A stretch of DNA of 64,000 bases from Magallana gigas (GCF_963853765.1 NC_088854.1:50654001-50718000); one strand, 5' to 3'; positions 37,791-64,000 are shown, counted from the stretch's first letter. A program made the numbers and translations. Notes: generated by a model from the sequence alone, not told the origin.

Positions 37791-37921
37791 NNNNNNNNNN
37801 NNNNNNNNNNNNNNNNNNNNNNNNNNNNNNNNNNNNNNNNNNNNNNNNNNNNNNNNNNNNNNNNNNNNNNNNNNNNNNNNNNNNNNNNNNNNNNNNNNNN
37901 NNNNNNNNNNNNNNNNNNNNN
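37791..37921. other. Assembly gap
   Basis: 131 N bases. Confidence 1.
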
Positions 37922-40516: not shown

Positions 40517-43500
40517 ATGTCCCTACTATTAGCATTTGGATTTCTGCTACTTATTCCATCATCGCAAGGTAAGTAATTGTATTGTTATGAATTTAGATTG
40601 GCTAGATGGCTGTTGCCATTTTCAGACGGTATTAATCTCCTTAAGAATTCTCTATAAAGATGATGGAAATTTTTCTTTACTAATAGTAGTTTATAGCTTA
40701 AAATTGCATCATACTAAAAATTAAGGTACATTGTATATATGTAGGCTAATTTGTTGACCAGCAAACCATCTTCGATAAACAAATTTTAAAAATCGCAGTT
40801 TATGATCTATATTGTATAGTGTATAATGGAATGTTTATTAATCAAGTATTTTTTATATAAAGGTCAATGGGCAGGTACTCCTGGGGGCGGGGGTAATAAT
40901 CCTGGGGGAAATAACCAGCAGGGCGGAGACATTCTGGGCGAACAGACAGCCCCCGCACAGCTCCCAAACATCCGGTCCCAGCAACAGACGCCCGGATTCC
41001 CCCAAAACTTTCAGGGTTTCCCCCAGCAAAATAATTTTGGAGCTCAGGGGTTAGGTGAGAGAGGCCAAATGTTGCTGCTAACCAATGGTGCTGCCAGTGT
41101 ACTCATAGCGAACCGTGACCGCCTCCCCCGCGACAGAGTCCGCAGGGTGGGCGTTCCGGTCTCACTTATTCGTGCTTTTGCTATTCAGCCTGAGGTTTTG
41201 CTTCCATCTTCGCTTACAGCCAATGCTATCTCTAATGTTCGAACAACTGCATCCCGGCGAGGTAGGCTTTTTGATGTCACATTTATCAGTAATAAATCGA
41301 AATGAAAAGATTTTATCTTTGTTAAAAAATTTTGATTTATAAATTATATCTTTTATAATATTTGAACACTTACACATGTAAAAGATTAATTACCTATAAG
41401 ATTAATTGCTTTAGTTTTGTTGTATATTGTATAATTGTTACTTTTCACGACATGTACATTGTAAGTCTAATCCTCCAATAATAGTAAGTTTTTTTAATGC
41501 ACTACATGCTTTGCAATTGCACAATGTATTGTATGAATTGCTTTTATGTGTGTTTATTTTGTCAATTATCATAATGATGTATGTACATTCACATGTATTA
41601 AATGTTGTCTTTTGAGAATACCCAACCGCTTATATATCATATAAACCTTTACTGTCAATAGTTCATCTTTTATTAGTTACAGTGAGAATTAGATAAAATA
41701 TAATATCATATTCCTTTTTTATTTGAATTCACGATTTCCCTGTTGAATCTTAATTTGATAAACTCATAACCGAAAAAACGTATGTTGTGTCCGTTTAAAA
41801 CCGCAAAGTAATGTGTTTTTTTTTTTTAAAATAAGCATGTTTCAATTGTAGGCGGCGGAGGTAATCCTTTCCTGAGACAACAACCCTTTTTGCGTCGGCC
41901 TCGTAAGTTTTTAAAAAAAGAATTCCAATCTTTATTATTTTGGAACAATTTTTCTTATAGATAAGCATTGCAAACCCTTCTTTTTCTTTCTTCCTATATG
42001 AAGCATTTTTACCACCATTTGGAAGACAAGGACAGTTGCCATTTTCGCCATTCAGAGGTTTGACACTTTTACGTTTTTTCTACTCTTTTAAGACGATATT
42101 TTAATATTTTTTAGATACAAGTATACACTCAAGTTTATATTTACATTTTTCTGTTATTAGAAATAATTTTAATTGCCAATATCTTTCATAGGACCTTTTT
42201 TTCCGTTTTCACCTTTCGGAGGTATGAACGTCCAAATATATGTACATGTATATATCAATGTGTATAGAATATCCAAACTAAGCACAAACAATTATTTTTT
42301 CCAATGCACTATACTACAGTGTATCTTTTAGCTGAATTACAGTTGCATGTGCTTTATTACATCTTTAGTGTCACGTGTATGTTATATAATCGAAATTTTG
42401 AAATTCCAATTATCTTATTAATTATAAATTACACCATTATGCACTAGATTATTAATAAGTGACATATATGATATAACATAAAGTGATATACTTTTTAAAA
42501 AAATCTCCGTGAACAGAGTTTTGTTCGAACTTACTGATTTTTAATACATTTAGTATCATAAATTTCCAACATTAGCCTTTAATTGTTTTATCTCAGAAAA
42601 GTGCACGACAAAACATTTTTAAGGTCTTCTCGTTATCAAACACACTTCTTATGATAAGAAATTCATGAAATTTTGACACAGTCAAACGGATCATATTACC
42701 AAGTATCTATCAGTTTAATCAAATTTGACCTTTTTGTTTTCGCATAAAGGTCAGGTCAAGGTCACTACCTTTTTCCTCAACATAAAGGATGATAAAAATA
42801 AGTGTAGCTCTTTGTAGTTCTGTAGACATTTGTTTAAAATTTGAAGATTCTGTTCTTCAATGAAATAATAGAATATCAAAATGTCTATCAGCTTATACTA
42901 CTTAATTGAAATAAATATTTATACTAAAATTGATATTGCTTAGCCCGCATTTCCTCTAACTTTCTTAAATTTTGAAGAAATGTTGATCATTTTATTTTAT
43001 TTTTTATGCTTCCAATTATAAAATACTTCTTATTTTTATGTATTATGAAGACTTTATATAAAGATATAAATCGACAGAAAAGCTTATGTGTTGACCATAT
43101 AATAAGAGAGAAAAACATATTTTAGCGATTTTTTCCCACAAAAATCAATGTATTGATTGGGCGCTTTAAAAAGCTTGTAAAAAATGTAATTTGATAGGCA
43201 AATCATATTTTTAAAACATATTCTGAAACCCAAGTATCATATCATTAGTTCACATTGGTAAAAAAAATCCAACATTAATGTTATTGTTTTTAAAATGCTA
43301 AAACAGACTCATTAATCTGCAGCAATTCTGAATTGCAAAACATGTGATATTTTCCTACGCCAATACTAAGCCAAAAATATAGCCCTTGTTAGATTCTTAA
43401 CATTGATTAATTTTTCTATGCAAAGTTGTATGATAGTAAAAAAGAAAGAAAAATAAAAAAAATTAATTTCCTTTCATCTCGATTTACTGAACAATTAAAC

Positions 43501-46500
43501 AAATTTACGTTTGACAAGTCAAAAACCAGAAAAAGACTCCTTTCTTAATTTTATTTCGAATCTGGCGAAAATTGACAACGGCTGTTTTATGGTTTATAAT
43601 CCGCAAACTTTTAAGGTTAGGGTTAGGGTTAAGTGAACAAGGGCGTGCTTCAAAGTAGCATCATAATTCGGATAATTCAACAAAATTAAACAACTTAAGT
43701 TCATAGAAATCCAAAAGTTCACTTAACGATCAAAGTTCACTAAAAGTTCAAAGTTCACAGGTTAATACCTTGACCCAGGGAACTGCAGAAGTTGAGTTTT
43801 TATCGCTGACTCTTGGGAGGTAAAGGGGTCGATCTCGGCATAATAAAACATATACTAGTCTCAAATCACAAGTACCAAAATTTCAAACTTTATACTGACT
43901 TATATAATCTTCCATACAAATTTTATAAAAATGAAATTTCAAACTTGATACCGTTTTCACTCGACAAGTAGATATAAATACGAAACATTATTAGCTTCAC
44001 AAGCAATCAATGGGCACCCATCTTATTTACACGTACCAAGGCTTCTGTATTGCATACAATGTATCTATGCACTTTAGTATTCATAGCTTGGTGGTATTGC
44101 TTTAATACTATATTCATATATAGTTATGTCTTATCAATTTTGTTATAAACTATGTGTATTTAATATAAGTGAATCAAACGCTCAAAATAACCAGTATTTT
44201 CATATGTAACAAAACCAACTATTCCATGCCTTTTATTCATTTCATATGCAATATATGCAATTTTTTTCACGACAGGCAGACCAGGTTTTCCACCAATTGG
44301 AGGTAACTTTGGAGGTAAATTCGATTATTTCTAATTAACACATCAATAACATTACCATTTGTATGTGATATATGTGGTTGCAAAAATATCTATGAAAGCA
44401 AAAAAAAAAAAAAAAAAATAAGCACAAATTATCAATTAAGGATTGCGTAAATTAACATTTCAAAATGTAAAATACTTAAAGAGTCTTCATCTATCTCGTA
44501 TTTATTAAGTTTTCCAAAGACCAAATGAATATGTTAATTGAAGAAAGAAAACGTTTTTTTACTTGGACATGTAATTCACGAGATTTTATAACTTTATTTA
44601 AGGACGACCTGGACTCCCCGGATTTCCTGGATCTCCCTTCGGTATGTACTAATTTATTACTTATAATCGTGAACCGGTACAAATGTTCATTATTTAAAAC
44701 CCACAGGCACCTGACGCTTTCTCATATATAAAAATATATAAATGAACCTCCTACCTTATAATACACAGGTTTATTATTAGGGAAATGGTATATATTTGTT
44801 ATATATGAAAAATATATAAAAGTCAGGTGCTTGTGTTACACTACCATTACTCTACGAGCTAGAAACGTCGATTACGTGCACCTTTCAGAGACTTGAAGAA
44901 TTTGAGTTTATGATTTACATTCATTTTATTTACAGGACAACAAATCCCATTCCAGCAACAGCCCCCGTTTTTAGGAGGAGCCGGAGGTATGTGTTTTGGT
45001 TGTGATATTCCAGTTGCTACAGTCTGCAAACTGCGCGCGGTTAATTAGACAGCGATACAAGAGTTATGAAACCAGTTTTGCATTTATTTCTGCCCCAATG
45101 ATATTTGTTTTGAATTGAACTTGAATAAATTAAATGTTATCTGATTCCTATTTCATGGATATTAATTTTTTATTTATTTATTTTTTCTTCAGGTCAAGGT
45201 CAGGGGCTTCCTGGCCAAGGAGGAAATGGTAAGTTTACCAGAAAGATCCTCTAAAGATACGACTGAATTGTCTGAATTTGACATTCATCATATTTTTTAA
45301 TGATGTCTGTACTAATTTAACATTTTTTTCTTGATTTCTCATAGCTTTTGAATTTCAATCACCTTTTTCTGGAGACTTAGGTATGAATGCAAAGGAAATG
45401 AATGTTATTATTTCCCTTTGTTATCGTACTTTGATCAAAATTTTAAACAATCTAATAGACAGGGAACAACGCAAATATTATGTTCAAACTAACACATTTA
45501 ACATTTTTACAGAAGAAATTCTTTCATGATATAAAAGAATTTTAGATAAATAGAGATCGAATGTGTAAACCAAATGTATGCCACCAACCATCGTTCATAT
45601 ATGGTATAAACGGTGTGATGGGACCCCCTTGTTTCATTGTAACGACAAGTTAGCAAGATTTTTGTTATATTGACCAATAATATTTTTTATTGTAATCCTG
45701 GAGAAAAAATTCAAATCCTTCACTCTATTCACTTCACCCTGGGAATATGGATTTTAAGCTATTTTGTATCCTATATTGCATTGTTTTTAGTGCATGAAAT
45801 CCTTTTATTTGATTCAAAATAAATGGAATCATCAACAACATTTCTTTTCTGGTTGTTTTTTATTTTATTATTTTGAAAAAAAAATTGATTAAGCTTTTAT
45901 TTTCTGTTTTAGGTGCAGGGGGCAACCAAGGAAATAACGGTAAGCTTAATCTCTCCAAATTTCTTATTATGCACAATTGGTTGACTGTATCGTCAAGTGT
46001 CGCTCTCATTTAAGGAATAAGGAATCATTCTTTAAGTATTATGAGGTAATATATTTGGACGGGGCGTAATTAATTCCAATAAAGACTGAAGAGCTTTATT
46101 ATAGATTTGATCACGCCCCGATCGATATAATCACCTAATAATATTTAAAGAAAGATTCGTTGTTACTTATAATTATATAATTTAAGCAATTGTATTAATA
46201 TTAGAATATACCTAATGTTAACTATCTTAGAAAGAACTTAATGCAAACCCTCTTGCGCGCCAACAACACGTCATTTGTATTTATAGGACAGTACGTTTCA
46301 AAAACTGATTCGTAGTGTTACCAGTGACATACAAAGACGCTTAGTAATATTATATGAGAAATATATTACGTCAGGTGCTTGTGTTACACTACCATAACTT
46401 CTCGAGCCGGAAACGTCGATTCCGTGCACCTTTCAGAGACTTGAAGAATTTGAGTTAATGATTTACATTCATTTTATTTACAGGACAACAAATCCCATTC

Positions 46501-49500
46501 CAGCAACAGTCCCCGTTTTTAGGAGGAGCCGGAGGTATGTGTTTTGGTTGTGATATTCCAGTTGCTACAGTCTGCAAACTGCCCGCGGTTAATTAGACAG
46601 CGATACAAGAGTTATGAAACCAGTTTAGCATTTATTTCTGCCCCAATGATATTTGTTTTTAATTGAACTTGTATAAATGAAATGTTATCTGATTCCTATT
46701 TCATGGATATTAATTTTTTATTTATTTATTTTTTCTTCAGGTCAAGGTCAGGGGCTTCCTGGCCAAGGAGGAAATGGTAAGTTTACCAGAAAGATCCCCT
46801 AAAGATACGACTGAATTGTCTGAATTTGACATTCATCATATTTTTGAATGATGTCTGTACTAATTTAAAATTTTTTTCTTGATTTCTCATAGCATTTGAA
46901 TTTCAATCACCTTTTTCTGGAGACTTAGGTATGAATGCAAAGGAAATGAATGTTATTATTTCCCTTTGTTATCGTACTTTGATCAAAATTTTAAACAATC
47001 TAATAGACAGGGAACAACGCAAATATTATGTTCAAACTAACACATTTAACATTTTTACAGAAGAAATTCTTTCATGATATAAAAGAATTTTAGATAAATA
47101 GAGATCGAATGTGTAAACCAAATGTATGCCACCAACCATCGTTCATATATGGTATAAACGGTGTGATGGGACCCCCTTGTTTCATTGTAACGACAAGTTA
47201 GCAAGATTTTTGTTATATTGACCAATAATATTTTTTATTGTAATCCTGGAGAAAAAATTCAAATCCTTCACTCTATTCACTTCACCCTGGGAATATGGAT
47301 TTTAAGCTATTTTGTATCCTATATTGCATTGTTTTTAGTGCATGAAATCCTTTTATTTGATTCAAAATAATTGGAATCATCATCACCATTTGTTCCGATT
47401 GTTTTTGGATTTAAATATTTTGAAAAAAAAGTTTGATTAAACTTTTATTTTCTGTTTTAGGTGCAGGGGCAAACCAAGGAAATAACGGTAAGCTTAATAT
47501 CTCCAAATTTCTTATTATGCACAATTGGTTAACTGATTCGTCAAGTGTCGCTCTAATTTAAGGAATACAGAATCAGTACTGAGTATTATGAGGTGATATA
47601 ATTTGTCGGCGCGTAATCAATTCCAATCAAGCCTGAAGGGCTTTATTATAGATTCGATCACGCCCCGACCGATACTATCAACTTATAATATTATAGATTC
47701 GTTGTTACTTATAATTATATAATTTTAAGCAATTGTATTTATATTAGAGTATAATTAATGCAAAGTATATTAGAATATACTTAATGCAAACCCCGCTATC
47801 GCCCCAACAATAAGTCATTTGAATTTATAGGACTGTACGTTACAAAACTGATTCGTAGTGTTGTGACATACAAAGACACTGAACAATGTAAATGAATTCG
47901 TGTACTTTGGAGTTCAAATTTCATCTTTCTTTGTTCTGTACGTATAATCAGTTTTTTGTATCAGGACTTTATATTCTATAAGCATTACAGGGAAATATTC
48001 GCCCGTTTTATTTTCGTCCCTTACACCCTTGTTGCCAGCGGGCGAATTTAAGACTGTGTGAATTTCGATGTTTCATATTATCTTTTTTCAAACACAACTG
48101 TGTATGGGCGACTTCAAGACGGTGCGAAACTGTTTGCTTGTGTAGAAGGGTGAAAATTAAACGGGGCAAATATAACCCTGTATACAGTGATGCTATCTTG
48201 GGTGTTTTCCATTAGAAGGGATTTCTGACATTTTATGTAGCAATCAACTTCAGTCATTTGCTTGACTCCTGTATAAAGGACATGATATTAACCATAATAA
48301 CCATTTGAAAAGGGGATTTTAGTGAATCCAGAGATGTACAGGTTATTGCTTGTACTTGGACAAAATATTATTGAAACTAAATTTAATATTTTAGCTCAAC
48401 AACCGTGGAACATACCTAGATTCAACCAAGGTACAAATTAAAATACCAATGCATCTGTGTGTCAAATTGTCTCGTAAACCACTAATACTGTATATAAAAC
48501 TAGGGACCAGCTCTCCGTTTAACGTGCCATTGTCTTTCTAGAAATGTTTAATTTGTATTCTAATGTAACAATTTTCTTTGTCTTCACTATGGATTATAAC
48601 GAATAACACTTTTGCTTTCATGCGAATTTCATGTTTGGAATTCAGATTTTGACGAATCAAATTTTTGGGCTCTAGACTTTTTTAACTTGTTTCTTGTGTT
48701 CCTAATTGCTGTTTTACGACGGCTTTACTTTTTAAGTCCTGAAAGTGTTACTTATGGATAGACAAATACTCGCTAAAAGCTCGAGTAAGGGCTATTAAAA
48801 TGCTTTTTCTGTCATCGCAAAGTAAAATAATAGATAAATTGATTGCTTTTCGTTCTCTGACATCGTTCATTTTCTGATCGGTTTTGCAATATGCTTGCTT
48901 TGCAAAACATAAATCAGATTTTCAGTTAATGCTCGAACTATTTTGTGTTTAACATGCACTTTTTGTTTTAAATAATGAAAAACTATATTCATGCTACAAA
49001 TTCTTAGTTTTTAAAAAAAAATGAAACATTTAATTTATTCATTTTCATATTTCAGGCCAAGCTGGGCAGGGTAAGATATTTGATTATAACTTTTGGCGGA
49101 GTGCAGTCACTTCTATAGAAACATTTAGTACATTTGTTGAATAAATATATTTTGTACCGTTAGTAAATAGATTTGGTTTACGTTTTCTAGCCATTGGTAC
49201 TATACCTCCACTCTCGTTTCCAGCGGGTATGAATAGTGTAGTCGATTATTGTTTCACTCTTGCATATCATAAAATGCATTTATATGTATTATACCACAAC
49301 TTAAATATTAAGTACGAACAATAAATTGAATACACTTTTAACTAAAAAGTATCAAAATGGATAACTCAGAAAAAAGCTAAGATGCAAATTCCGAAAGCTT
49401 GCTGAAAGTTATAAATAAACTGCAGAATATTTAAAAAAGAATATACACGTACATGTAAATAATGCTGTATTGTTTTAATTAATATATTCATTTGGAATCC

Positions 49501-52500
49501 AAGAAAATGCATCTTGTTTCAACAAGTGAATTCAGTTGGTTGATTGATTTAGTTAGACTCAGTTTGTCCTTTGCTTAACACATCTTGTACTTATATTATA
49601 AAAAAAAAATTGATAAATTGGCACTATGACCGTAGATTTATGTTGAATTCCTTTGTATATGCATGCATAAAGTCACACCATTTTAGTCATTCGATGTATA
49701 ACGACCAGTCCATAGAAAATGTCGATGATAGATATGGTAAAAGGCGTACCGAATAAAAGAGATTCACCCATGGAATCTTTAAAGGGACATGGTGACGATT
49801 TTGATCAAATTCTATTATTTACAATGTTTAAAAAATGCAATTACCAAATGAAATTTGCGAGTTAGTCGTAGAGTTATAAGCAAGATACAGTGCTCACAAG
49901 TCTTTGTCATGTAAAACAAGGCTCGTGTTTTGTTTTTGTTTACTTAGGTTCGATATACCACTAAAAATGTTTTTCAAGATTTGTCTATTATCTTATTCAT
50001 TTTAAGCATAAATAAGAGTTCCTAACCTTTAACACATTCATCTTAGGTGTTAAACTGGAATTTTCACCTGAGCATTCAAAATGTAAATAAACGCTTTGTT
50101 TACATAGCAAAGAATTGTAAGCTCCGTAACTCGCTTTTGTCTCAACGAATGGCACTAAAATTTTAGTTGCCTTTTAAAAATTCCTAAATAAAGCATTGTA
50201 AACATTAAAATTGAAAAAAAGTTTGACTAAAATCGTGACCATGCCCCTTTAAGTTGTTTAACGTTTTTAGTTTTACCTCATTTCGCAGGTAAAATAGGTA
50301 ATTGGAATCTATGAAAAAAATATTGTTACATTCGTCTTTTGAATTGATAAGCATCTAATACTTATTGCTAAATAAAAAAGATATAATGAGTCTTTATCAA
50401 TATCATGTCATGAAATGTTTACCATATCTTATCATAGAGGCAATTGATACATCCATCTTTATTTTTGGAGGAAATATATCAACAGTTTTTTAAAAAGCTT
50501 CAAAAGGTTCGGTTTAAAGACAAATTCAATTTATGCTGGTGCATTCCTTTTGTTTTTAAACATTTTCATCACATAACTAAATAATTTTAAGCTATCGTTT
50601 GTTATACATTGAATAACTGAAATGGAAGGAAAAGAAATAGAAAAATCTCACGGCTTTATAAATATTTACTTTTGAGTAAAAGATTCGTAACCTATAAAAG
50701 CATACGCTACCATATACTTTCCTTTTTTATGCACAACTATCCAAAACCCTGATGTCTATTGATTGGATTTTAGACACCTTTTCACTTCCATCTATAATTG
50801 GCTGGTTAAGGGTGTGCATATGTTTATGTTAAACTTATGAATAGACCGAACGTTTGGATATAATCGTCAAATATCAATGATAAGCTTTGCTTATCAATTT
50901 AATTGGCAAAATAATGCTAGGAATATTTATGTGTTATTTAATTCAAACATACGATGGCTTTTGATATGATTATAGAAATATTGACATTGATAACCTCTTT
51001 TTTAATAATTGTTTACCACATCTTTAGACCCCATTTCAATCTTTTGCTTTTTCAGGAACAGGAGGAGGTGGATTTCAACTTCCCACAAATGGTACGTTTA
51101 TATCTTAATTACATTTTGGATTTTTTCAATCATAGATTAGCACATACGAGGGCTGTTCTTAAATTACGTACACTAAGAAATTGTGCAAAGACATTTTTGA
51201 AAACATTTTTGAGAAATAAATTTGTTATTTTAGGTCAACAGCCTTGGAACATTCCTAATTTTAATCAAGGTACAACATAATTATGTATTTGTCAATAAAA
51301 AAAATCGAATTCTGCTAAAACAGGTTACAAATACTTGCTTTCTAGCTCTCGCTCTTCTAATGACCTTAAACTGACGAAAACACCACTTTACTTTAACCGT
51401 TAGCAAAAAATAATTTAAAACGTTTTAAGCCATTATTTGAACTATTACACGCTATGCTCCATTTATTTTTGTCGCCATTGCCTTGAGAACTATATTTTCA
51501 ACTTTATTTAAACTGTGAACTGAAATTGCATTGATTCTCGCTCTCTGTTTGTTCTGCACACTGTTTTGCAACACGAAGTCCACAGTATGTTTAACGTGCT
51601 TCTTTTTAATGACCTTCAATGCTAATGAATATGAACGTTTTTAAAGTTCATTCTGAAGAACTAATATTGAAAATATGAAAAACTATCTCTAAAAACCTAT
51701 GTCATATCTGCTCTCATAACACCTGCTTATATGTCTGTACTTTTTGTTGTAACAAGATACGAAAGGATTGTTCTATTATTTTTATCTGTATGAAACATCA
51801 AATTGTATTTAAAAATTAAAAAAATTCATAATTTTCACCATTCGTATTTTTGTATGATTGTTTCTCATAGCACTTTTGATATTTTAATTTGAAAATCGTT
51901 TTCAGCGATGTTTTATTCTTAACAGAAATGTTTAACTCATTTTTTGCTGAATGGTTTGATGAACGTTTCACCTTGGCAAGGATGTAATATTGTAATGCAT
52001 TCTTGTAAAATACTTATCATTGATTTTACTTTATGCTCTTTTTAGGTCAAGCTGGACAAGGTAAGATAAACAATTTTGATAGTCTTTGAAACAAAAAATT
52101 CAAAGATTTAAAGTTTCTCTCATCAGTAGAAATTACTTGATTTTGATAAGAAGCATTAGCATGATAGATAAGATGTAAAAAGTCAAATAGGCGAAAAATT
52201 GCAATATCAGATAAAAATAACCTTTTCAAAAATTGTGTTTAGTCAATGTGAACAAAAGGCCTAGGCGGGTTCGAACCCACGATCTACGGTTCACAAGCAT
52301 GGTACTTAAACCACTGAGCTATGACGATATAAACAAAATCGATTGATATTAACAATTAAACAAAACATATATATCGCCATCTTGTGACGTAGTACAAAAA
52401 AGGTATCAGTTTAGGTGTAGTGAGGTACCTTAAGAGACACATTTGTTTACATTTGCGTACATATATTGACCAACTTATATAGAGATTTTATTTACGTTTT

Positions 52501-55500
52501 CTAGCTGTTGATACATTGCCCCCATTCTCGTTTCTCCCAACTGGTATGAATAGTGTACTTTATTTGTGTTTTACTATATAGCATGATGTAGTACATGTAT
52601 TTATTCCATATATCGTGTTATAAAGTAGGTATTAGTACGAACAATCAATCGAAAGCATTAAGATAATTAAGTTAAGAAGGTCATTGTGGGCAACAACTAA
52701 TAAAGTTATTACTATCTTCATTTTAACATAAAAGGATATTCTTTTCTAACAATTGAATTCGATTGATTGATTGATTGATTGATTTAGTCAATCCGCTTCT
52801 GTAGATAGTTTAGTACGTCTCTTGATCATGTCATATTATGAACTATAATACCAATAATGATAACATTATAATGATGATAATATCATAAAATACTGATAAA
52901 TTACAACACTTTACAACGCTATAAAACCTTTGCACATATATTTGTATTTTGTGCATACGTCTATTTCACTTACAATCCCTTTCCCCGAACATATTTAAAA
53001 ATTGCACTTGTTTTATCATAAAATCCTTCACAAACATCAAGTGAGTAAAGAATTACATCATGTTCCTCCGTACAAAACACAATATAGTTGAAAATTTAGT
53101 GTCTCTCATTTGACTGAAACCTAATTATAGTAAAAGTAAAACCGTTATATTTTTTCAAATCTATGGTACTTAAATTTAATATAGTAATTTTGATTTGGTC
53201 ATACAAATATCGGAATATTTTTATTTCAAATATCTTTTGCGTGCTTTTATTCATATACCTGCACACTCCTCTTCAGTTAACAACCTTGCCTGCAAATCAT
53301 ATTCATAAATGTTTATGAAGTCAGTAAGAAGTGTATTCTAAAAATGATAATGAACAAATAAATTATAATTTATGTGAATTGTTATGGAATGATAATCGTT
53401 TTATTCATATGAAAATAGTTTTATACAGTTTATGCGTAATGATATCATATTTTAGATTTTTGTTTTAATATCTCAAATTATATTAGATTTTAGATTTTTG
53501 TTTTAATTACTCGAATTTTCTGCTCACAATTTCTCAGGAACGGGAAGTGGATTGCAACTTCCTACGAATGGTATGTTTTTTATGATTCTTTTTCAGTTAA
53601 TTTCATTTTGTATCATTAATACATGAAAGACAAAAATAAAGTCTTACCTCTTTCCAAATTTTGAAGGGATAATGTCGATTTAAAGAATCAGTTTTTTTAT
53701 TTATCACCCATTGAATAACTTGTATTTATAATATAAATTGTCGAAGAGTTTAAATCAAATTTGGGGAGATATTTTTTTTTAAACTATATTTTACCTATGT
53801 TCTAGGTCAGGGAGGACAAGGTAAGTTTCCCCTTCACCTTGCTTCAAAAAATGTACCTTTTTGGAACCCGCTTTTTTAAACTAATTTTAGTTGAAGCTAT
53901 TCCGGATATAGTATCTCTTAGCTATAGATTTGGGGTTTTTTTGCGTTTGACGCAAATTCATACCCCCTTTTTTTTAAATGGAATGCAAAATGGGATGTTA
54001 AAAAGCTGTTAAAGAGTATATGATTATGAATGATTGTAAATTTGTACTGTGTGATTACTTGACAAAACTAAATCCAGGGACAGTCCGTTATTAAAATCAT
54101 TTATTGCTAAATGAGTAAATGTTTAACATTTACAGATTAGGCAGAATGAAACTTGTAAACTAATAAATCCGTTTTGATATTGCAAGAAACGTTTATTTAT
54201 GTAACAAAGCGGCAAATATTACATACAAAATGTTGACATATGCATCATACGGTAGATGATGAAAAAGTTAACAGCTTTGTACTATTCTTCTTGGCATCCC
54301 TTTTGAACAAATATTTTATCGTTGCATATTATAAATGTTGAGTAGCACCTTGGTATAAATCTTCCACATTGCATCAACATGTAACAATATTTAATGACAT
54401 TGTTGAACGAAAAAATGCATAGTATCTCATTTACCGGGTGTATCTAGTTTCATAAAAAGTTAGTGAGCTTTCCATAATTGAAATACATACTAAAACATAT
54501 GTATCCACATAAAAGCACCCAAAGCAACTTTTCAGACGAATTACTTTTTTAAATTAATTAGGAGGAATCCCAGGTGGATTAAATCTTCCAAACGGTATGT
54601 AAAAAGTATACATTTTCTATGTAAGTGAATAATGTTAATTTGTCAACTGTAACAATAGTTTAACATTCAAAAAGGCAATATTTGCGTTAATTTACTGATT
54701 TATGATAATCATGCTACATGTATAATTTTGTCTTTGTAGTACCCGGTGGATTTAATTTTCTGAATGGTATGTAACATTACAACATTGTAACAATACAAAT
54801 AGTTTGTAATTTAAAGAAAGAGAAAAAAAGATGAACCTATAAAATCTAATAAATTTAATTTTCATTTAAGATACGTATATGGGTAAAACGTAAACATAAC
54901 TGTCAGCTATTTCAATGATTAGGAGATTCTGATTTGTCTAGTTGAGGATAGTTTATTGAACCTTCGTTTCGAGATTGCTTTTCTCATTATTAGGCGGAGC
55001 ACCTGGTGGATTAAATCCTCAAATTGGTTTGTAATTGTCTATTCATTTACTATGTGTAACAAACTTTTTTAATAACTGCAAATGAACATTGAAATTGACA
55101 ATCGAAACATTTGGTCAAAAAAGTCTGATATTATGATGTAAAACGTTTAGGTGCTACAGCTTCTTGGTATGATCATTAACAACGAAGCTTTAAATTCATT
55201 TTGTAAATGCAAGGCAGTCTCTATCTGAAATAATTTTTTAACCTATTTATTTCGTAGGATCTGGAGCACCAGGTGGATTTAATTTTCTCAATGGTATGTA
55301 AAATTGTTTCTATTTTACGTTGTGCTTTTTTCCGATAGTTGTATGGTCATAAGTAATGTTATTGATATATTCGGAATTGGTTTTATTTTTTTCTGAAACA
55401 ATCATTCAAAAAGGATATGCATAAAATAAATGTATAAATATTTAGATAAGTGTTAGAAGACGCATCTAAATCTTACTTATAAGGTTATATATGATATGTT

Positions 55501-58500
55501 GTGTGACGTTAATAATTCGTGTAAAAAATGCTTTATCTATGATCCATCTCATTTAATTTGCAGGCCAAAACGGACAGGGTAAGATTTAGCATGTTTAGGC
55601 TAAAACTTCTTTGCTTAAAATCATTATATACCTAATAAAATTTGTCTACCGATAACTTTGATTGGTTTCTTGTTTTAGGAATAGGTTCAATTTCTCCATT
55701 CTCATTCCCGACTGGTACGAACTAAACCTAATTGGACCTAAACGTGTACTCTGCACATTATAGAATAGTATGCAACATGTATCGCAATATATATATATGT
55801 TCGTACATATATAGCGTTTACGAACTTCAGTGTTTGAATTATGTATCGTTGGTTCGTTTGTTTAGCTTGATGCTAAAATAAATCAATATTTCAGTAAGAT
55901 TTGATAAGTAAATCTTCGTTAATGTAAGAATCAAATTGGGACATGCAAGAAAAGTGATTTGCTTTTTTTCTTTTGTATCCAATTTATATGTACATCCATG
56001 ATTTCATTTAAAAATTGTTGGCTGAATCATTTATTCAAGCTACATTTTAAGTTGATGTTCGTTTAAAAGATATTTTGATTATGATTATTAAAACCACTTT
56101 TATCTAAAACCTATCTTTAAAACGTAATCCTTTTTATCTAAACATGTAAATATTGATTAAGAACATTCAAAACATTTTATCTAACTAATTAATTTCACTA
56201 TCAATCCTTAAGTGCAACTTTTTCGTTCTCTTCGGTTTTGACACATATATGTGCTCGCTTAATTTCTATATTCATCATATATAACAAATATGTTAGTGAC
56301 TATATTTTAGATATCATATATATTTTAGGGGCTCAATTTTCTAGTATTTTGCGGAACTCTTACCCATGCTTAAACCCCATAACAGTGGTTGTAACACTGC
56401 CTTTACTTTTTATATACACATGAAAAAAACAAAGAAATAAAAAAAAGTGACAATGCATGAAAATTTAACCCACACTTTATAACGATTCCACAGTAATCTT
56501 TAGGTGAAGGATTTAGTTTTATTAGCATAGTACACATGCCATATTATGTCATTGTCAAAGTTATTCTTAGTCGTTGATTCTTTAAATGTTGTTTTAGTGT
56601 TAAAGATCAATTTACAAATAAAAATATTATCTGTTAAGTACTCATAAAAGATAGATTACGTTCAGGTAAGCATACTTAGTGTGTCTGCGAAAGGTTTTGA
56701 TAAACAGCTGTTGCAAAGAAACTCAACTTGAAATTTCATGAAATTGATAAAATATATGATTCTTCATTTTTTCAGGAACTACTGGGGGGCTTCAACTTCC
56801 AACCAATGGTATGTATATTTGAATTCTTTTTACTTTTTTGTAGGTGTTAGTTAATTTTACCAAGGTTAAGATTATTTTCTCTCTGTTACATTGTCTTCAG
56901 ATAAGAATAATACGATTATAAAGTTGGGTCACAAGTTTTAAGTAAATATAAAGTTCTGAACTTTCAAGAATAAAACAATTAATATTTTTACTTCTTTTTA
57001 GCCCAAGGCGGGCAAGGACAGGGTAAGTTTAAGTTATCTCAATGACATGTTTGCGAAATATTATTTTCAAAGATAATATCTATACGAAGCTTTGTGAACA
57101 CGTACATTTTACATGTATAATTGTAATTCTGTTACAAGCAATATACGACATACTATTTTCTACTTTAAGGAGGAGCTGCTGGCGGGTTGCAGCTACCAAA
57201 TAATGGTATGTGATTCTCCAATCACTGTAATAATCATATTTGAAATTACTTTTTGCACTGTGTATGCACAGTAAATATAGTTTTTCGCTTTGGTTGTGAT
57301 AGGTTTACCAGAACTAGTATATAAAAGGATGAAATTGTTAATAACTGAACAAGTGTTTGTTGTCACAAAAACAGACAAATCCTGAGAATTTCAACTATAA
57401 ACTATTAGCAGATACGTTGTTTACACTCGAATGCTGGACATCGTCACACATAAATGAAAATGAATTCTATGAAATATTGTTTAAAATATATTTTTAAAGC
57501 AAAACAAATATCTTTTGACAATAAGGTACAAACAAATATTCGCTGGGTTTTTTCCCAAGACTCATTTACAAAATTTTGATTATCTACTTATTATCAAATG
57601 TACTAACAAAATAGCTAATATATTTTTAGATGTTAATGTATATCAGTTAAATGAAAGTGAAATTATTTTTCTTCATCAAAACAGCAGGAGGTCGATGGAA
57701 TCAAGGTATCCTGCACGCAATAATTAACATAATATACAACTTTTACATTTAGTAATTATAATTTTATTATTTTGAGATTAAAAACAAAACTTTCTACTAA
57801 AAAATATTTGATTAATTGTTCTTAAAAGTTATTAGAAATAACATTGTTTAATGATTGATACTATTTTAATTGTTTCTAATTTGCTAGTCAATGGATGATA
57901 ATTCAAAATCTTTAATTCAGAATAATGATACTTTCTTCATTTAAAAGAACTTTTAAACGCTTTAAAATCACCTAAAAAATCTAACAAATCAGGCAGCTTA
58001 AATGGAAACAAATATCAACTATTTTGTTAATGTTAAAAAAACCTTGGAAGTAGTCCTTAAAAACTATTCCAAACAGAAATTTTACCCAATTCGTTGTTTA
58101 CATTTGATTAGTTTTACCACAACAAATTCAACAACGATCTTTCCCCCGAGTCAATTCAGGTACAAAACCGCTGTTTAATTAGCTATTCAATGTCTGTTGC
58201 TTATCTTTGTCAAGCATTTATAAAAAGAATTTATTGTCATGAGATTCTTAAAAACAAAACGAAAATTATTGTAAAAACATTTTCTTCATCTAATTGATTA
58301 TTATTCAACTATTAGCAATTTTACAAATATGAACATGAATATCAACTCGGTATCTTTAAAGCATTTTGTATTGATAGAAAAACATCCAATAAGATTCATA
58401 CAATTCTCCTGTGCAGAAAGGCTACTGGTTATTTGTGATCTGACGTTTATTTTGACTTAAAACGCATGATTGAATAAATGTTGCAAGTAATGCCGGTCAT

Positions 58501-61500
58501 GCTATCTGTCGTTGTTATATTTGTAAGGTCTTTGGTATTGATTTGTATTCATATACATTTGTATTTTTACTTTATCATTTCAAACAATACGGAATTACTT
58601 TACAATAATAATTTTAAATTATTTTTGCAGCACAAGGTTTACAACAAGGGAACCTGGGTAAGTTATACAAATAATCACGTGTAGTCATGTTTTATACCAG
58701 CCTCTTAATCATTTACTTTTAAGAAAGACGGCCAAAGTTAACAGTTAGCGTGTTAAGATATAAAATTAATCAGAAAATTGTGATATGTTTTAGCTGGCAG
58801 TCCTTTCACAGAGGTTGTTGGTGGGTCAACAAACTGGGATTCACTAGGTCTTGCTATTTTGTGTATTTCATGCATTTAAGTTCAATATTGTAGAGTAGAT
58901 AACTATTAAGAGTAGAGTAGATAACTATTAATATCGTTCTATTTTTGACTTTGTAAGTTCCAACATTATTTTATAGGGCAAACTCAAACACCTGCTGCAT
59001 GGATGCAAGGAGGTAGTGTGTATTCTGTAATTTAAGTTTTCTTACATTATTGTGGCAACGTTTTATTTTCTTTGTTGTACAATTAAAAACACAAATTACT
59101 ACTTCTTAAATTTAGGACTTCCAAATCTTAGTGGCAATGGACAACCTAATCCTTTAGGTGCACAGAATAATCCATTACAAGGTTTAGAGATTATTTTATA
59201 CAACCACTTTCTGTTTAAATAATGTGAATTTTTAATCAAATATCTTATAATAAACATTATTGCATATACTTTATAGCAAATGGTCAAAACGGAGGATTAC
59301 CACTTAATCCATTTGGACAAAGCCCACCATTTCAGGGTTTGTGTTACTATACATTTATTTTCTTTTAAGTACATTTACAAATGTGTTTAAGAAAAAATCA
59401 TTATATCAATATTCTATTTCGAAGGACAACTTCCCTTCCAAATGCCAAGTGGCAATCCTATTGGTGGAAACAATGGAGCACAAGGTATTGATAACTAAAC
59501 ACAATATATTCGTCGAGAAATTATAAATATCAAAATAAATGTTGTATTTTAGAAGTTTTGTTTACATTTATATTGTTTGATAGCTTAATTTTAATTTTTG
59601 TTTAAGGGTCGAATAACCAGAATCCATGGACGCCATCAACTCGTAAGCTTAGTGTTTTAGTGGTGTAGATTAGCATGTCAAAATTCATTCATTCTGAAAC
59701 ATATCAACTCTCTTCTCGAGAAGTTATCGACTTGAATAAATGCTATATATTAATTGAATTTGTCATTCTTTTATGTAACGAGTTTAACAATGTAACAAAA
59801 GTAATGCAAAGCATTATTTTGAACTAGGGTAAATTGTTAAGTAACGAAAGAATTTCATCACATTCATAAGATTTTCTATATTTCTGATTTTGTAAATGAT
59901 TTGTTTAGAACGCATTACCATTCTTAAAATGTTGTTTGCTTTTGATATGTAAAGATTTTTTGAGAATATAAAAAAAAGTAAAATAAATGATTTTATTATA
60001 GTTAGTTAACTATGAAAACATTATATAAATTCACATCAAGTTGTAAACTTCAATTATTCTTTTTCATTCACAGCAACACAACAGCAAAATACAGGAGTTT
60101 CAGGTAAATAGTTGGTAGATAAGCTATGGAACAACTCGACTTTAATATGCACCTGTTACCGACCTAGCTTAACTATTCTTTTTTTTTTTTTTTTTTTTTT
60201 TAGATCTTTTGCCCGGTTTTACATTTCCAGACAATTCTGCATTGACCTCCAATCCGGGTAATGGAGGAACAACGACTCAAGGAGGAGGCATTGATTTGTC
60301 CTCATTATTTAACCAAGGTTCAGGAACAGAGACACCGTCTATTGATTTCGCATCTCTTTTTGGGAATACTGCAGGTTCAGATACAACCCAGACATCGCCA
60401 GACACAAATCTTCAGAATCTTTTCCAAGCCATGCAAAATGCAGGACCTCCTCCAGGAAACAATGCAAATAATGGAAACCAGGCTTCTAACCCCTTTGCAG
60501 GTCTCACTGCTGGTAATCAGCCATCTCAAGGTTCACAAAGTACTAATCCTTTTGGTCTTCCGGGTAACATTCCATTTAGCGCAAACCAAGGTTCGCCATT
60601 TGGTGGAGCCCCGGGAGGTAACCCATTTCAGACATTTCAAGGTAATCCTGGAAACCCAACAAGTGGTATCCCAGGTCTAAATACAGCAAATTTCGGAAAT
60701 CAGGATAACTCGCAATCATCTGGTGCCCAAGGTAATAATCCATTTGGAAATATTCCTTTTGGTGGAATGCCGGGCCTTCCAGCCCCAGGAGGACAAGGAA
60801 ACAATCCTTTTGGCGGTCAACCTGGTTCTAATCCGTTTGCTGGACTCCCAGGTTTAGGAGGTTTTCCAGGGGGAAATATGACCGGACTTCCATTTGGAGG
60901 TGCTGGAGGATTACCGCCCTTTATGCCCGGATTCCCAGGAGGATTTCCCCAGCTGCCCCCAAATGGTGGAGGTTGGTCGAATTCTTTTTATCATTTGATT
61001 GTTAGATTGTCCAGTGACAGAAAAATGTGTTGGTTTAGTATTTCAAACTTAATTGCATTGCTATTTTAGTTTCGCAAACTCGTCAATCTACCGCATCAAC
61101 AGTTGTGCGATGCTGTTTAATATAAAAATTAAAATAGCAGCTGTAAATAGGTTCGAAAATATTGCATGCAAAATGTAATACAGTTAAGGTTTTCCCTGTA
61201 GTAACATTTGCATGCATTTGGAATTTCAATAATTAGTAGAGTGGTTCAATGTACGAATGGAGCTTTTTATTTTGTCCTAGGTACTGGAAATAATCAGGAA
61301 ACTCCAGGTGTGTTTAACCCTCCCGCATCACAAATGGGTGAGCAATATATATGTGTGTGTGTATTCGGACTTGATATATTAAAGGGGAATTATAATGTGT
61401 ATTTAATGCAAGCACCCTTTGTGCATGCCGATATTGTAATATATGATACACCCAGGTAGCTTTTTCTGTAATTTTATATTTATGTGTCTGTAATGACAAT

Positions 61501-61982
61501 TGGAGACTGCATAAAACTCAAAATAATTGTTAGATATAGCACTGGTATATAGCAGGGGCTGATGGTGGCACCTCCTCACTATTTCCCTTTTCTGTATTCC
61601 CTGTAGACTTTTTACAAGGATTAGGAACAGCAAATACCCCTTTCCCTGGTTCCTCTAGTGGTGAGCTTTAGTTTTTAGCATTATATATAGTTCAAAATAT
61701 TATTGGTGTTATTGTTTTGTGTCTTTGATTTGCAGTACTAGAATATTATTCATGTAATATCAACTGTATATTTTCTTGTTGTAAAAATGCTTATTTTAAT
61801 ATCTCTCTTCATAAACAGGTGGTCAAGGGTCAGGAAACAGTCCATTTTCCAGCCAGTCGTCTATTCCTTCCAACAGCCCGTTTTCCGGCTCATCGTCGTC
61901 TGGTACCGATCCATTCAGTAGTTTTAGAGGAACTGATCTTACTAACATACAAATTCCCGGAACATCACCATTTTCTCGGTGA
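40517..61982 (+). CDS. Secreted low-complexity G/P/F/N/Q-rich protein encoded by at least 46 exons (~900-990 aa)
   Basis: Signal-peptide exon 40517-40568 (MSLLLAFGFLLLIPSSQ). Then 40863-41054/41261, 41852-41902, 42004-42057, 42192-42221, 44276-44314, 44603-44641, 44936-44986, 45193-45228, 45345-45380, 45913-45939, 46484-46534, 46741-46776, 46893-46928, 47461-47487, 48395-48430, 49056-49070, 49191-49226, 51056-51091, 51234-51269, 52046-52060, 52505-52543, 53538-53570, 53806-53820, 54562-54594, 54740-54766, 54994-55026, 55258-55293, 55564-55578, 55679-55714, 56776-56808, 57002-57022, 57170-57205, 57685-57705, 58112-58159, 58631-58657, 58794-58847, 58977-59012, 59277-59336, 59425-59484, 59607-59642, 60074-60103, 60204-60971, 61281-61337, 61553/61607-61660 and 61819-61982 (TGA). 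All are AG/GT bounded, multiples of 3 and phase 1. Confidence 0.85.
44800..47880 (+). repeat. Tandem duplication of a ~1.55-kb, 4-exon unit
   Basis: GTCAGGTGCTTGTGTTACACTACCA at 44822 and 46370 (period 1548); the exons GQQIPF.., GQGQGLP.., AFEFQSP.. and GAG.NQGNN each occur twice. Confidence 0.95.
46010..46170. mobile_element. Palindromic repeat element (second copy ~47555-47710; fragment ~19882-19920)
   Basis: AAGGAATCATTCTT..TATTATGAGGT..GGGGCGT arm pairs with ACGCCCC..ATCACCT.ATAATATT..AAGAA.GATTC; three occurrences in the window. Confidence 0.6.
47995..48188. mobile_element. Short MITE-like element
   Basis: Imperfect TIRs TACAGGGAAATATTCGCCCGTTTTA and TAAACGGGGCAAATATAACCCTGTA. Confidence 0.55.
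49783..50248. mobile_element. Kolobok-like MITE (466 bp)
   Basis: TTAA TSD at 49779-49782 and 50249-50252; TIR AGGG(A/G)CATGGT(G/C)ACGATTTT with purine-start termini. Confidence 0.8.
52256..52430 (-). mobile_element. tRNA-like head within a repeat ending in GAGGTACC|TTAA
   Basis: On the minus strand, box A TAGCTCAGTGG and box B GGTTCGAACCC with an unpaired anticodon stem; ends at a Kolobok-like terminus at ~52430; the opposite terminus was not found. Confidence 0.55.
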
Positions 61983-62091
61983 TGATACTTGATCTCAAAA
62001 CTACAAATTAACTGAGGCTAAAGTGATCGTTTTGTTTGAGAACTAACAACCCTCTTCTCAGAAGTTCTTGTGGCTATGGTTTATGAAGTAA

Positions 62092-62182
62092 AATAAAACT
62101 ATCAAACATCCTGTTGACTGAATATTAGTTTGTTTTGTTGGAATAAAATGCATGTATTGATACTAATTCTTTTCTGAATAAA
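62092..62182 (+). terminator. Candidate polyadenylation signals of the micro-exon gene
   Basis: AATAAA at 62092, 62142 and 62177, 110-200 nt after the TGA. Confidence 0.55.
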
Positions 62183-63148
62183 TGAATGACCTTTTTTGTA
62201 TTTCTCTTTATCATTTTATTAACAATAAAATATGATAATGGTTAAACACAAATTACACTACAGAATAAAGAAGAATTTATTATTCAACCAACGTTAATAT
62301 TTAATGAAAATTTAAAAAAATGTATTACAAAATTAAATGCATGGATTTATCCTTTTTTTATTTATAGTTTTATCTGATGGAGTATTGTATGAGTTGATTT
62401 TATGAAAAGATTCATTGGAACTTGAAATTTTCTGACAAATATATTTTTATTTCTAATTTCATATTTTTTAACAGAAATGCAATATGCGATTGATTGTTAA
62501 ATGATTAAAAGTCTTATAATTGAAAGAAAATTCATGCGAATATTACTTATCATGTTCCGTAGCCATCAAATTGTTATATAGCTATTCCTTAAAGTCGTTT
62601 AAAGGTAATTTCAAACTGGTTTTCAAGGTAAGATTGACACGTCATACAAAAGAGGACCTATGTACTGAAGTTTATTCTTGTTATGCTTACCTAATTTGCT
62701 TCAGGTGAAAATGTGTCATTCAAAAGATAAAAGTGCCTCACCTGACTGGTCCTTTTTGTCTTTTAGATTCCTTTAGCAATCCACCACACTATAAACTATG
62801 TATATATATATATACAAGAAAACTATTATTTTTTTCTTTTTTGTGCTTGAGATTATATTAACATTGTCTATTTTGTATTTCTTTTTTGCACCTTTGACAA
62901 CACATTAACATCAGTCTCTAATACTTATCCTGCATGACTTGCATGATTCAGTATAGTGCATGACAGTGGTAGATGTGTCATTTATTATACAGGTTATTTT
63001 ACAAAAAAGTGATAAAAATTTATTTATGATGAATATATTCTTTTAAATTAAATACGATTGTTCAATATAACATATATCATAGATAATAATAACAGAATTT
63101 TATGACTTGAAAGAAATGTGATATTTAGAGAATACGTTGCTTTTACAG

Positions 63149-63208
63149 GCAACTCAATGACAACGGAGCCACCCCCACCTTTAGTGTTTCCAGCTAACTC
63201 AAACAATG
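63149..63208 (+). other. Orphan symmetric phase-1 exon (GNSMTTEPPPPLVFPANSNN)
   Basis: TTTTACAG acceptor, GTGAGT donor, 60 nt, open in phase 1, with composition like the upstream micro-exons. Confidence 0.55.
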
Positions 63209-64000
63209 GTGAGTCTTTTGTAAAGTATATAGAAGTCCTCATTGAATACTGTTTTCAAACCAATATTTATTTGCATTTTGGAAACTAAATGATAGAACGA
63301 TACGAATTCCACATAATTTTGTAACTTTTAAAGTCATCAATCAAAAGAAAAAATCATGTTCAAAAGACATTAAAGATACTTAAAAGTTAACTAAAAGTAT
63401 GCTGGTCATTTTTTATATCAGGGCAGGCCTATATTTTTTAGACCTTTTCATTTTAACTAAAGGATTTTTACTTTCGTCATTTACCTTAGCATTGCCGACT
63501 GTCATCAGTTTCAAAATCATACAGGCTTAATACGATCACTTTATGTATTATTTATAAGAATTGATGGTGTTTTTGCTGATATAAGTGATAATTTTCTACG
63601 AGGACACACGAACCTTCAACCAAATATTATCCATGTATCATTCTTTATCATTTCGATTTGCACCCTTTCATTTTATTCTGACAAAACTGACCATAATTTG
63701 AAATGAATTGTAGCCGCCGATAGTAGACCAGGAAGAATCATGGCGGTTATTGACATGACAAATGCAAATGAGCAGAACTTGTCTACGATGATAAAAGTAT
63801 TATCGAATATGCTCAATGCCAAAAGTGAGTTGCACAAGCAACGCATATTGATTGAGGCTCAAAATAAAAGCTTTTCCTGTTTGCACAACTTTTGATTACT
63901 TGCACGGGCACTACATACAATATTTCGGATTGTTTAACTCCGTTTGTATCGTTGTTCTGTTAAATTCGTTAATAATGTTTGTTGTCGGTAACCGGGAATT

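Follow-up and report, generated by a model that had tools for sequence, protein, structure and literature searches.

A single-copy Pacific oyster gene built from phase-1 micro-exons, with about ten optional exons and a predicted secreted, silk-like product

In tropoelastin (ELN), a secreted and disordered polymer rich in Gly and Pro, the internal exons all split codons after the first base and several of them are alternatively spliced. The micro-exon genes (MEGs) of schistosomes, reportedly described by DeMarco et al. in 2010, are said to form gene families, to be connected with parasite glands and to encode small products almost wholly from micro-exons. Here we analyse a gene of related design in a 64,000-nt stretch of DNA (GCF_963853765.1 NC_088854.1:50654001-50718000; hereafter the window), which a reading made from the DNA alone (the sequence-only reading) had attributed to an apparent mollusc and which belongs to the Pacific oyster, Magallana gigas. 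The gene lies on the + strand, with its start codon at 40517. That it is a real micro-exon gene is borne out by an exon chain assembled by hand, by a signature scan and by RNA joints across exons 28-44, and we lean towards the view that this single-copy gene encodes a secreted, disordered, silk-like matrix protein of 840 to about 963 residues, the aromatic content of which would be set by splicing.

The likeness to both known systems that had been proposed holds for the design of the gene and does not extend to family membership. With tropoelastin the oyster gene shares a uniform phase, in-frame cassettes, short alternating module types and cassette splicing, the latter being observed for exon 30 in RNA and for other exons in the RefSeq isoforms. 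Unlike tropoelastin, to which it has no sequence relationship, it has much smaller exons (15-66 nt), places Gln, Asn and Phe where tropoelastin has Val and Ala beside Gly and Pro, and possesses neither Lys-Ala or Lys-Pro cross-linking exons nor any Lys in its repeat region. With the schistosome MEGs it has in common a signal-peptide exon, symmetric micro-exons that are multiples of 3 in length, and isoforms produced via exon skipping. It differs from them in that micro-exons contribute 1428 of its 2892 coding nt (about 49%) and are mostly constitutive, and in that the gene is single-copy, with isoforms of 840-939 residues that look structural. No sequence relationship to MEG proteins emerged from an exhaustive profile-free protein search and from word-indexed searches, in which all matches were to oyster proteins apart from one distant homologue and a spurious match to a bacterial repeat protein.

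RefSeq already contains this exon structure, and genes of such a design are familiar from tropoelastin and the MEGs; what is added here is the recognition that the public name is wrong and the idea concerning optional exons. In the literature searched, no paper was found that links micro-exons with oysters or with molluscan secreted genes, or that cites the RefSeq accessions of this gene, and the matches to 'collagen alpha-5' concern other genes. Alternative splicing of shell-forming genes has been reported in a gastropod (PMC6007483).

The exon chain was assembled from the + strand between 40000 and 64000, where short GC-rich islands stand within AT-rich DNA, each with a pyrimidine tract and AG upstream and a GT(A/R)(A/T)G downstream. 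In the form first proposed, which extends from 40517 to a stop codon at 61980-61982, there are 45 internal exons, all multiples of 3 in length and all in phase 1; the sequence-only reading had recognised the uniform phase and counted 44 internal exons, a number that is also left here when the unused exon 37 described below is dropped. Exons 3-43 form an unbroken series of 41 exons of 15-66 nt, slightly more and slightly larger than the 40 exons of 15-60 nt of the sequence-only reading, which likewise has four 15-nt exons (here at 49056-49070, 52046-52060, 53806-53820 and 55564-55578). The lengths of the internal exons are 15 nt (four exons), 21 nt (two), 27 nt (four), 30 nt (two), 33 nt (four), 36 nt (13), 39 nt (three), 48 nt (one), 51 nt (three), 54 nt (three), 57 nt (one), 60 nt (two) and 66 nt (one), to which are added two large exons, one of 399 nt at 40863-41261 and one of 768 nt at 60204-60971. 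Every one of the 46 introns has GT..AG borders, and the GC content is 48.7% in exons versus 28.0% in introns.

The codon that is split after its first base was expected to be usually a Gly codon, and Gly is indeed re-formed at 30 of the 46 junctions, followed by Ala at 10 and by Pro, Val and Asp at two each. Since the last base of an exon, nearly always G, opens a codon whose other two bases stand at the start of the next exon, Gly or Ala is re-formed at the junctions, and since a codon is re-formed at every junction, duplication or skipping of an exon never breaks the frame. To gauge the pattern numerically, the window was scanned with a strict signature (pyrimidine-rich acceptor, G at both exon ends, open phase-1 frame, good donor and GC of at least 0.40). 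On the + strand, 28 matches were found in the gene versus one in the other 42 kb; on the - strand, there were none within the gene span and three elsewhere. The micro-exon pattern is far beyond chance. One study reports, among its findings, that phase-1 introns are over-represented at signal-peptide cleavage sites (PMC1626468) and another, among other points, that exon-phase symmetry accompanies disordered modules (PMC3632108); the oyster gene is an extreme case of this principle.

An exhaustive search with exon 2 led to XP_065933146, an 840-residue protein named "collagen alpha-5(IV) chain isoform X50 [Magallana gigas]". RefSeq represents the gene by XP_065933102 to XP_065933146, with isoform names that reach X50, and already models the micro-exons. 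The suspicion of mis-annotation was thus justified for callers based on open reading frames (ORFs) in other collections, which recognise no more than the two large exons, each as a protein of its own (171 and 214 residues; P0002 and P0001), and misplaced for RefSeq, where the structure is correct and the product name alone is wrong. Exon 2, exon 44 and exon 49 each indicate a single copy in the 564-Mb genome. The 90% cluster contains 32 further distinct sequences of the same gene, and 15 of these (X7 to X49, 852-939 residues) were compared together with X50 by matching exon peptides successively along each database isoform. All 16 parse fully into the hand-built exons up to the end of the window.

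The constant parts of these isoforms begin with exon 1 (40517-40568, 52 nt), which carries the start codon and the signal peptide in 17 codons plus one base; the N-terminus is identical in all 16, in agreement with the constant signal-peptide exon and the modular, low-complexity, predicted secreted product that had been put forward. It is followed in every isoform by exon 2a (40863-41054, 192 nt), the Gly/Gln/Pro-rich start of the mature protein, which ends at an internal GTGAGA donor at 41054 and replaces the 399-nt form, and by exons 3-7 (41852-41902, 42004-42057, 42192-42221, 44276-44314 and 44603-44641), which are Phe/Pro-rich. Exons 24-28 (53806-53820, 54562-54594, 54740-54766, 54994-55026 and 55258-55293) are likewise present in all isoforms.

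Variation is concentrated between these two blocks. Exons 8-11 (44936-44986, 45193-45228, 45345-45380 and 45913-45939) and exons 12-15 (46484-46534, 46741-46776, 46893-46928 and 47461-47487) constitute the two copies of a duplicated unit, in which exon 10 is included in 11 of the 16 isoforms, exons 12, 13 and 15 in four each and exon 14 in three. Exons 16-19 (48395-48430, 49056-49070, 49191-49226 and 51056-51091) and exons 20-23 (51234-51269, 52046-52060, 52505-52543 and 53538-53570) belong to an older module, where exons 16 and 20 are each included in 10 isoforms, exon 18 in four and exon 22 in 11. The 16 isoforms display 16 different cassette patterns, all other parts being constant. With exon 30, which is variable in reads, there are about ten variable exons (10, 12-16, 18, 20, 22 and 30), and the other micro-exons, about 30 in number, occur in every isoform and RNA contig examined. 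It had been suggested that any subset of exons could be skipped: the frame-neutral design would allow this in principle, but it is not what is observed, the variation being confined to some ten exons, with roughly 30 micro-exons always present. Inclusion of all cassettes in the form that has exon 2a and the helical end described below would give 963 residues.

The optional exons differ from the constitutive ones in composition. Aromatic residues (Phe+Trp) make up 19% of the single cassettes versus 8% of the constitutive micro-exons, and Gly+Gln 16% versus 44%. An aromatic residue is present in seven of the seven single cassettes and in 16 of the 33 other micro-exons (Fisher p = 0.014, in a test that involves only seven exons and classes set after inspection). 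There is thus an association by which the optional exons are aromatic/hydrophobic modules with Trp- and Phe-containing motifs and the constitutive ones mostly Gly/Gln-rich spacers.

RNA was placed on positions 55200-61000, using contigs of three runs (X1, X2 and X4) and one raw stranded polyA run (X21); exons 1-27 and the region after 61000 rest on the RefSeq models, not on reads. The 3' part of the gene is represented in twenty public runs, and RNA-type runs of several studies carry 0.64-0.75 of its words. When the stated cut offsets are allowed for, joints fall exactly on the model borders at 55714/56776, 56808/57002, 57022/57170, 57205/57685 and 57705/58112, and further exact joints were found at 58159/58631, 59181/59277, 59336/59425, 59484/59607 and 59642/60074. 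All borders tested in exons 28-44 are confirmed, including those of the 15-nt exon 29 (55564-55578), whose letters are found between the joints leaving exon 28 in three contig runs and in raw reads. Exons 31-36 (56776-56808, 57002-57022, 57170-57205, 57685-57705, 58112-58159 and 58631-58657) are constitutive in contigs and stranded reads, RNA joints show the same for exons 38-43 (58977-59012, 59116-59181, 59277-59336, 59425-59484, 59607-59642 and 60074-60103), and exon 44 (60204-60971), the largest at 768 nt and the carrier of repeats of the Asn-Pro-Phe-Gly type, is covered end to end by RNA contigs. Upstream, the letters of exons 25 and 27 precede exon 28 in contigs and reads; downstream, contigs and 13 reads continue from exon 44 into the start of exon 45. 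Transcripts that contain the micro-exons of this region, on which the proposed model depended, are thus observed. First mates in the stranded polyA library are all on the - strand, from which it follows that the RNA comes from the + strand, and the word depth of 125-365 across exon 44, in runs of about 100 million letters, indicates that the gene is well expressed.

Two exons of this region deserve separate mention. Exon 30 (55679-55714) is included in the contig of run X2 and skipped in those of runs X1 and X4, and the raw reads of run X21 contain three inclusion and seven skipping junction reads (about 30% inclusion). Exon 30 is therefore a true cassette, both forms of which occur within one RNA sample; it is found in none of the 16 RefSeq isoforms. 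Together with the 16 patterns of these isoforms, this shows that skipping does occur and that not all exons are constitutive. Candidate exon 37 (58794-58847, 54 nt) is open and in phase 1 and has a weak donor. In the M. gigas data it is unused: its read depth is zero, the joint 58657/58977 bypasses it in four of four runs and none of the 16 RefSeq isoforms contains it. Isoform X22 of the flat oyster Ostrea edulis does have an equivalent peptide.

Exon 38 (58977-59012) contains 12 extra in-frame bases (four residues) in contigs of three runs when compared with the assembly, and the Ostrea orthologue has the longer form; the difference probably reflects an allelic indel, in frame, in the individual used for the reference. 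The length of a 2252-nt contig of run X4 was considered as a guide to missing upstream cassettes and was dropped, the 3' end of this contig being incomplete and its 5' end perhaps as well.

Both ends of the coding region have an alternative form. Exon 2b (41055-41261) is an optional 207-nt extension of exon 2a, present in the long form of the sequence-only reading, and encodes a basic, non-repetitive segment. Its GC content is 0.54 versus 0.25 in the remainder of intron 2, and its gap-free alignment to a distant homologue on an ENA metagenome contig (L006, protein P0005) has 30 of 56 residues identical, 22 synonymous codon differences and mismatches at the three codon positions of 22/16/37. 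The synonymous differences and the distribution over codon positions point to purifying selection on the translated frame. The GTGAGA motif of the internal donor is also found in L006.

At the other end, the gene had been taken to stop at 61982, which does not agree with the annotated transcripts: in all 16 RefSeq isoforms, exon 47a (61819-61902, 84 nt) uses an internal GT donor at 61902 and is spliced to exon 48 (63149-63208, 60 nt, with AG/GT borders), then to exon 49 (63714-63824, 111 nt) and to exons past the window. Exons 48 and 49 are both phase 1-1, and the internal exons added 3' of 61902 are again multiples of 3 in phase 1. Beyond exon 49, a 63-nt exon lies about 0.3 kb and the final exon about 0.9 kb past the end of the window (located in L005). 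Exon 47b (61903-61982) is the alternative terminal coding end with the stop codon. A contig from a related oyster (L003, with about 80% DNA identity) preserves the frame and the stop position of exon 47b as well as the donor GT of exon 47a. In O. edulis, isoform X22 is annotated with the equivalent of exon 47b as its C-terminal end, and other isoforms of that species have the long helical end. Judged by this conservation, exon 2b and exon 47b are both real coding sequence.

The all-inclusive protein, summed by exon, contains 20.8% Gly, 12.8% Pro, 11.2% Gln, 10.0% Asn, 7.9% Phe, 7.8% Ser, 7.6% Leu and less than 1.5% Met; Cys, His and Tyr are absent. In isoform X7, Lys is found only at positions 902, 911, 912 and 918, all in the C-terminal exons, charged residues amount to 4.7%, and there are 15 FG and 34 PF dipeptides. 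The best reading of this composition, rich in Gly, Pro, Gln, Asn and Phe, is that the protein is intrinsically disordered. The N-terminus has a hydrophobic core (mean Kyte-Doolittle up to 2.97 over nine residues, peaking at residues 3-13) followed by a small polar stretch, and a secretion signal is predicted from this hydropathy. Silk-like structural proteins have been defined operationally in SilkSlider as secreted proteins in which some window of 80 residues has a Gly content of at least 25% (PMC4944945). The highest Gly content of any such window is 36.2% in X7, 42.5% in X50 and 35.0% in the Ostrea orthologue (i.e. 42.5% in the all-skipped isoform versus 36% in the near-full one), and the protein would be classed as silk-like by this definition, given the predicted signal.

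Searches were made with exons 2, 44, 47 and 49 one by one and, at full length, with database proteins. Pfam gave no family for the two large or the last exon, for isoform X7, for the Ostrea orthologue or for the distant homologue (at E up to 1 for X7 and Ostrea). A search of PDB sequences with isoform X7 gave no match, and the ESM Atlas had no usable match for the whole protein or for the C-terminal 84 residues. A word-indexed search with the least repetitive part of exon 44 retrieved only isoforms of the gene itself, and in a metagenome scan for relatives of exon 2 none of 600 pattern matches was confirmed. For exon 2, AlphaFold2 with a two-sequence alignment gave a mean predicted local distance difference test (pLDDT) value of 46, from which no fold can be claimed. 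The segment encoded by exon 49 is predicted by AlphaFold2 as one 36-residue helix (pLDDT 87-94), for which a prediction of a two-copy complex had a score of 0.18, set against a mark of 0.32, a value that speaks neither for nor against self-association.

In its predicted signal, Gly-rich low complexity, lack of a conserved domain and restriction to few lineages, the protein resembles the silk-like class of which the shematrins and KRMPs of pearl oysters are examples. It differs from these two in that it does not have their typical Tyr and Lys and is rich in Gln, Asn and Phe. No micro-exon architecture or splicing of this kind was found described for the silk-like class in the literature searched. 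A functional analogy, and no more, exists with the cohesive FG-repeat domains of nucleoporins, which are intracellular and form gels via aromatic contacts: the oyster protein likewise consists largely of Gly, Phe, Asn, Gln, Ser, Thr and Pro, has almost no charge and contains Phe-Gly and Pro-Phe repeats. Unlike the nucleoporins, it has a signal peptide and an expected extracellular fate, and the sequences are unrelated.

The gene bears the marks of duplications of different age. A 1.55-kb four-exon unit occurs in tandem at 44802-46341 and 46351-47880, with 93.5% identity over 1544 nt, and the paired exons of its copies (8-11 versus 12-15) differ by 0-2 bases. An older four-exon module consists of a Trp motif, a 15-nt Gln/Gly exon, a Pro-Phe-Ser-Phe motif and a Gln-Leu-Pro-Thr-Asn motif; its copies are exons 16-19, exons 20-23 and, partly, exons 29-31. 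Exons 16 and 20 are 78% identical, exons 18, 22 and 30 have one motif in common, and a 74-nt repeat is shared by the introns that precede exons 18 and 22.

Comparison with relatives shows continued change under a conserved frame. The contig L003 (1-5206, corresponding to window positions 59012-63997) is 86.6% identical in exons and 79.7% in introns. The best conserved of the small exons are 45 and 46 (61281-61337 and 61607-61660), with 96% identity, and exon 48 is 93% identical. Exon lengths change from 60 to 66, from 768 to 588 and from 84 to 78 nt between the window and L003, all being multiples of 3. In L003, nothing aligns with exon 41 and exon 44 has 180 nt fewer, which means that exon number and repeat length vary between close species while the frame is kept. 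In O. edulis, the orthologue bears labels such as "collagen alpha-1(IV) chain-like", its isoform numbers run up to at least X32, and cassette-type motifs are present. The part best conserved between Ostrea and Magallana is exon 49, with its predicted C-terminal helix, in which a run of 16 residues is invariant.

Two further observations concern these relatives. Ostrea isoforms (P0023 and P0038-P0040) exhibit in-frame differences of 62-66 and about 40 residues within the region equivalent to exon 44, which seems to be further spliced or split in that genus. In the metagenome contig L006, the distant homologue of exon 2 lies at 10001-11448 and is followed about 0.5 kb downstream by a much larger exon rich in Gly, Gln, Met and Phe, with no micro-exons; the gene caller of its source took TGA as a sense codon. 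This Gly/Met/Phe-rich exon prompted us to consider a link to abductin and the hinge ligament, which was not retained, the Met content of the oyster protein being as low as given above; it is a lead only.

Taken together, these data suggest the following history and mechanism. The gene would have grown via repeated tandem duplication of tiny phase-1 exons, and it now has about 30 constitutive micro-exons and about ten cassettes. Use of the alternative donor in exon 2 would drop the conserved basic segment 2b, and use of the alternative terminal donor would exchange a short low-complexity end for the conserved helical C-terminus, which has the only lysines of the protein. Splicing may in this way set the number of aromatic 'sticker' modules between flexible spacers as well as the presence of the helical end, and both of these would adjust how cohesive or viscoelastic an extracellular gel or matrix is. 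The shell, cement, mucus and ligament named in the sequence-only reading are candidate materials only. A more ambitious version, in which micro-exon choice is regulated and acts as a material rheostat, different tissues or stages secreting one polymer with differing cohesion, gel strength or mineral affinity, is speculative and in our opinion unlikely.

Several points weigh against a silk-like matrix protein with splicing-set aromatic content: (i) the label 'matrix protein' is drawn from composition alone, (ii) the residues that usually form covalent cross-links are absent, with no Tyr or Cys and no Lys in the repeats, (iii) the value of 2 x Pro + Gly is 0.48 and falls below the value of 0.6 that, according to a rule reportedly formulated by Rauscher et al. 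in 2006, is typical of elastomers, (iv) the RefSeq isoforms are models from a short-read pipeline, in which combinations of distant cassettes may have been enumerated and not observed, (v) exon 2b, for which no transcript was seen, and the stop at 61982 are found in none of the 16 M. gigas isoforms, (vi) the association between cassettes and aromatic residues has the small, retrospective basis indicated above and (vii) the cassettes coincide with the most recent, near-identical duplicated modules, and their skipping could be a by-product of duplication.

The last point leads to the strongest of the other explanations, namely that isoform variety is tolerated splicing noise, in which recently duplicated and poorly defined micro-exons are skipped without harm to the frame and without a regulated role. 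We regard this as possible and somewhat doubtful. The cassettes all lie in duplicated modules with near-identical neighbours (8-11/12-15, 16/20 and 18/22/30), the smallest and largest isoforms compared are only about 100 residues apart out of about 900, and both exon-30 forms coexist in one sample. However, cassette-type motifs have been kept in O. edulis, inclusion of exon 30 in about 30% of junction reads is no rare error, and the cassettes belong to one compositional class instead of being a random subset of the micro-exons. A generator of diversity of the schistosome MEG type, i.e. a secreted effector or recognition molecule engaged, for example, in immune or microbial interactions, is suggested by the order of the exons, with a signal-peptide exon and then many symmetric micro-exons in succession, and by isoform names up to X50 with distinct patterns in all 16 compared. 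It is nevertheless very improbable, since about 30 of 40 micro-exons are constitutive, the product is a low-complexity polymer of 840-963 residues with no folded recognition domain, the gene is single-copy with no expanded family and no flatworm relative appears among the protein-search matches. Finally, a type IV collagen, as in the RefSeq product name, is favoured only by automatic names in M. gigas and O. edulis and by high Gly and Pro, and can practically be dismissed given that no match to Pfam Collagen (PF01391) or C4 (NC1) was obtained at E up to 1, the longest stretch of Gly-X-Y comprises five triplets, Cys is entirely lacking, the C-terminus is a single predicted helix and no match was found among the sequences of solved structures.

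Some other features of the window were recorded. A run of 131 N (a gap or masked sequence) lies at 37791-37921, 2.6 kb upstream of the gene. Intron 5 contains a short run of telomere-like TTAGGG units at 43600-43630. In intron 21, a stretch on the - strand (52255-52330) resembles a transfer RNA (tRNA) and has a box-B-like motif; ARAGORN calls no tRNA there, and the stretch is probably a short interspersed element (SINE) or a tRNA-derived remnant. Between caspase genes and the micro-exon gene, two adjoining long intronless ORFs are present on the + strand at 24293-27153 (177 and 754 residues), the second of which has tandem repeats rich in Pro and Ser; the two resemble a gene derived from a transposon.

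To return to the gene itself, it offers an extreme and clean example of how a uniform phase allows exon duplication to enlarge, and exon skipping to diversify, a disordered secreted protein. If the rheostat were true, it would be a natural splice-programmed stickers-and-spacers system, and its optional aromatic exons, if regulated, would provide a compact natural model of how sticker number controls the behaviour of protein gels. The analysis also corrects a misleading "collagen IV" label that is spreading via annotations of oysters and flat oysters and hence into expression studies. Since there is no Lys and very little Arg outside its ends, standard trypsin-based proteomics of shell or mucus would probably miss the protein, which could be an overlooked bulk component of an oyster material.

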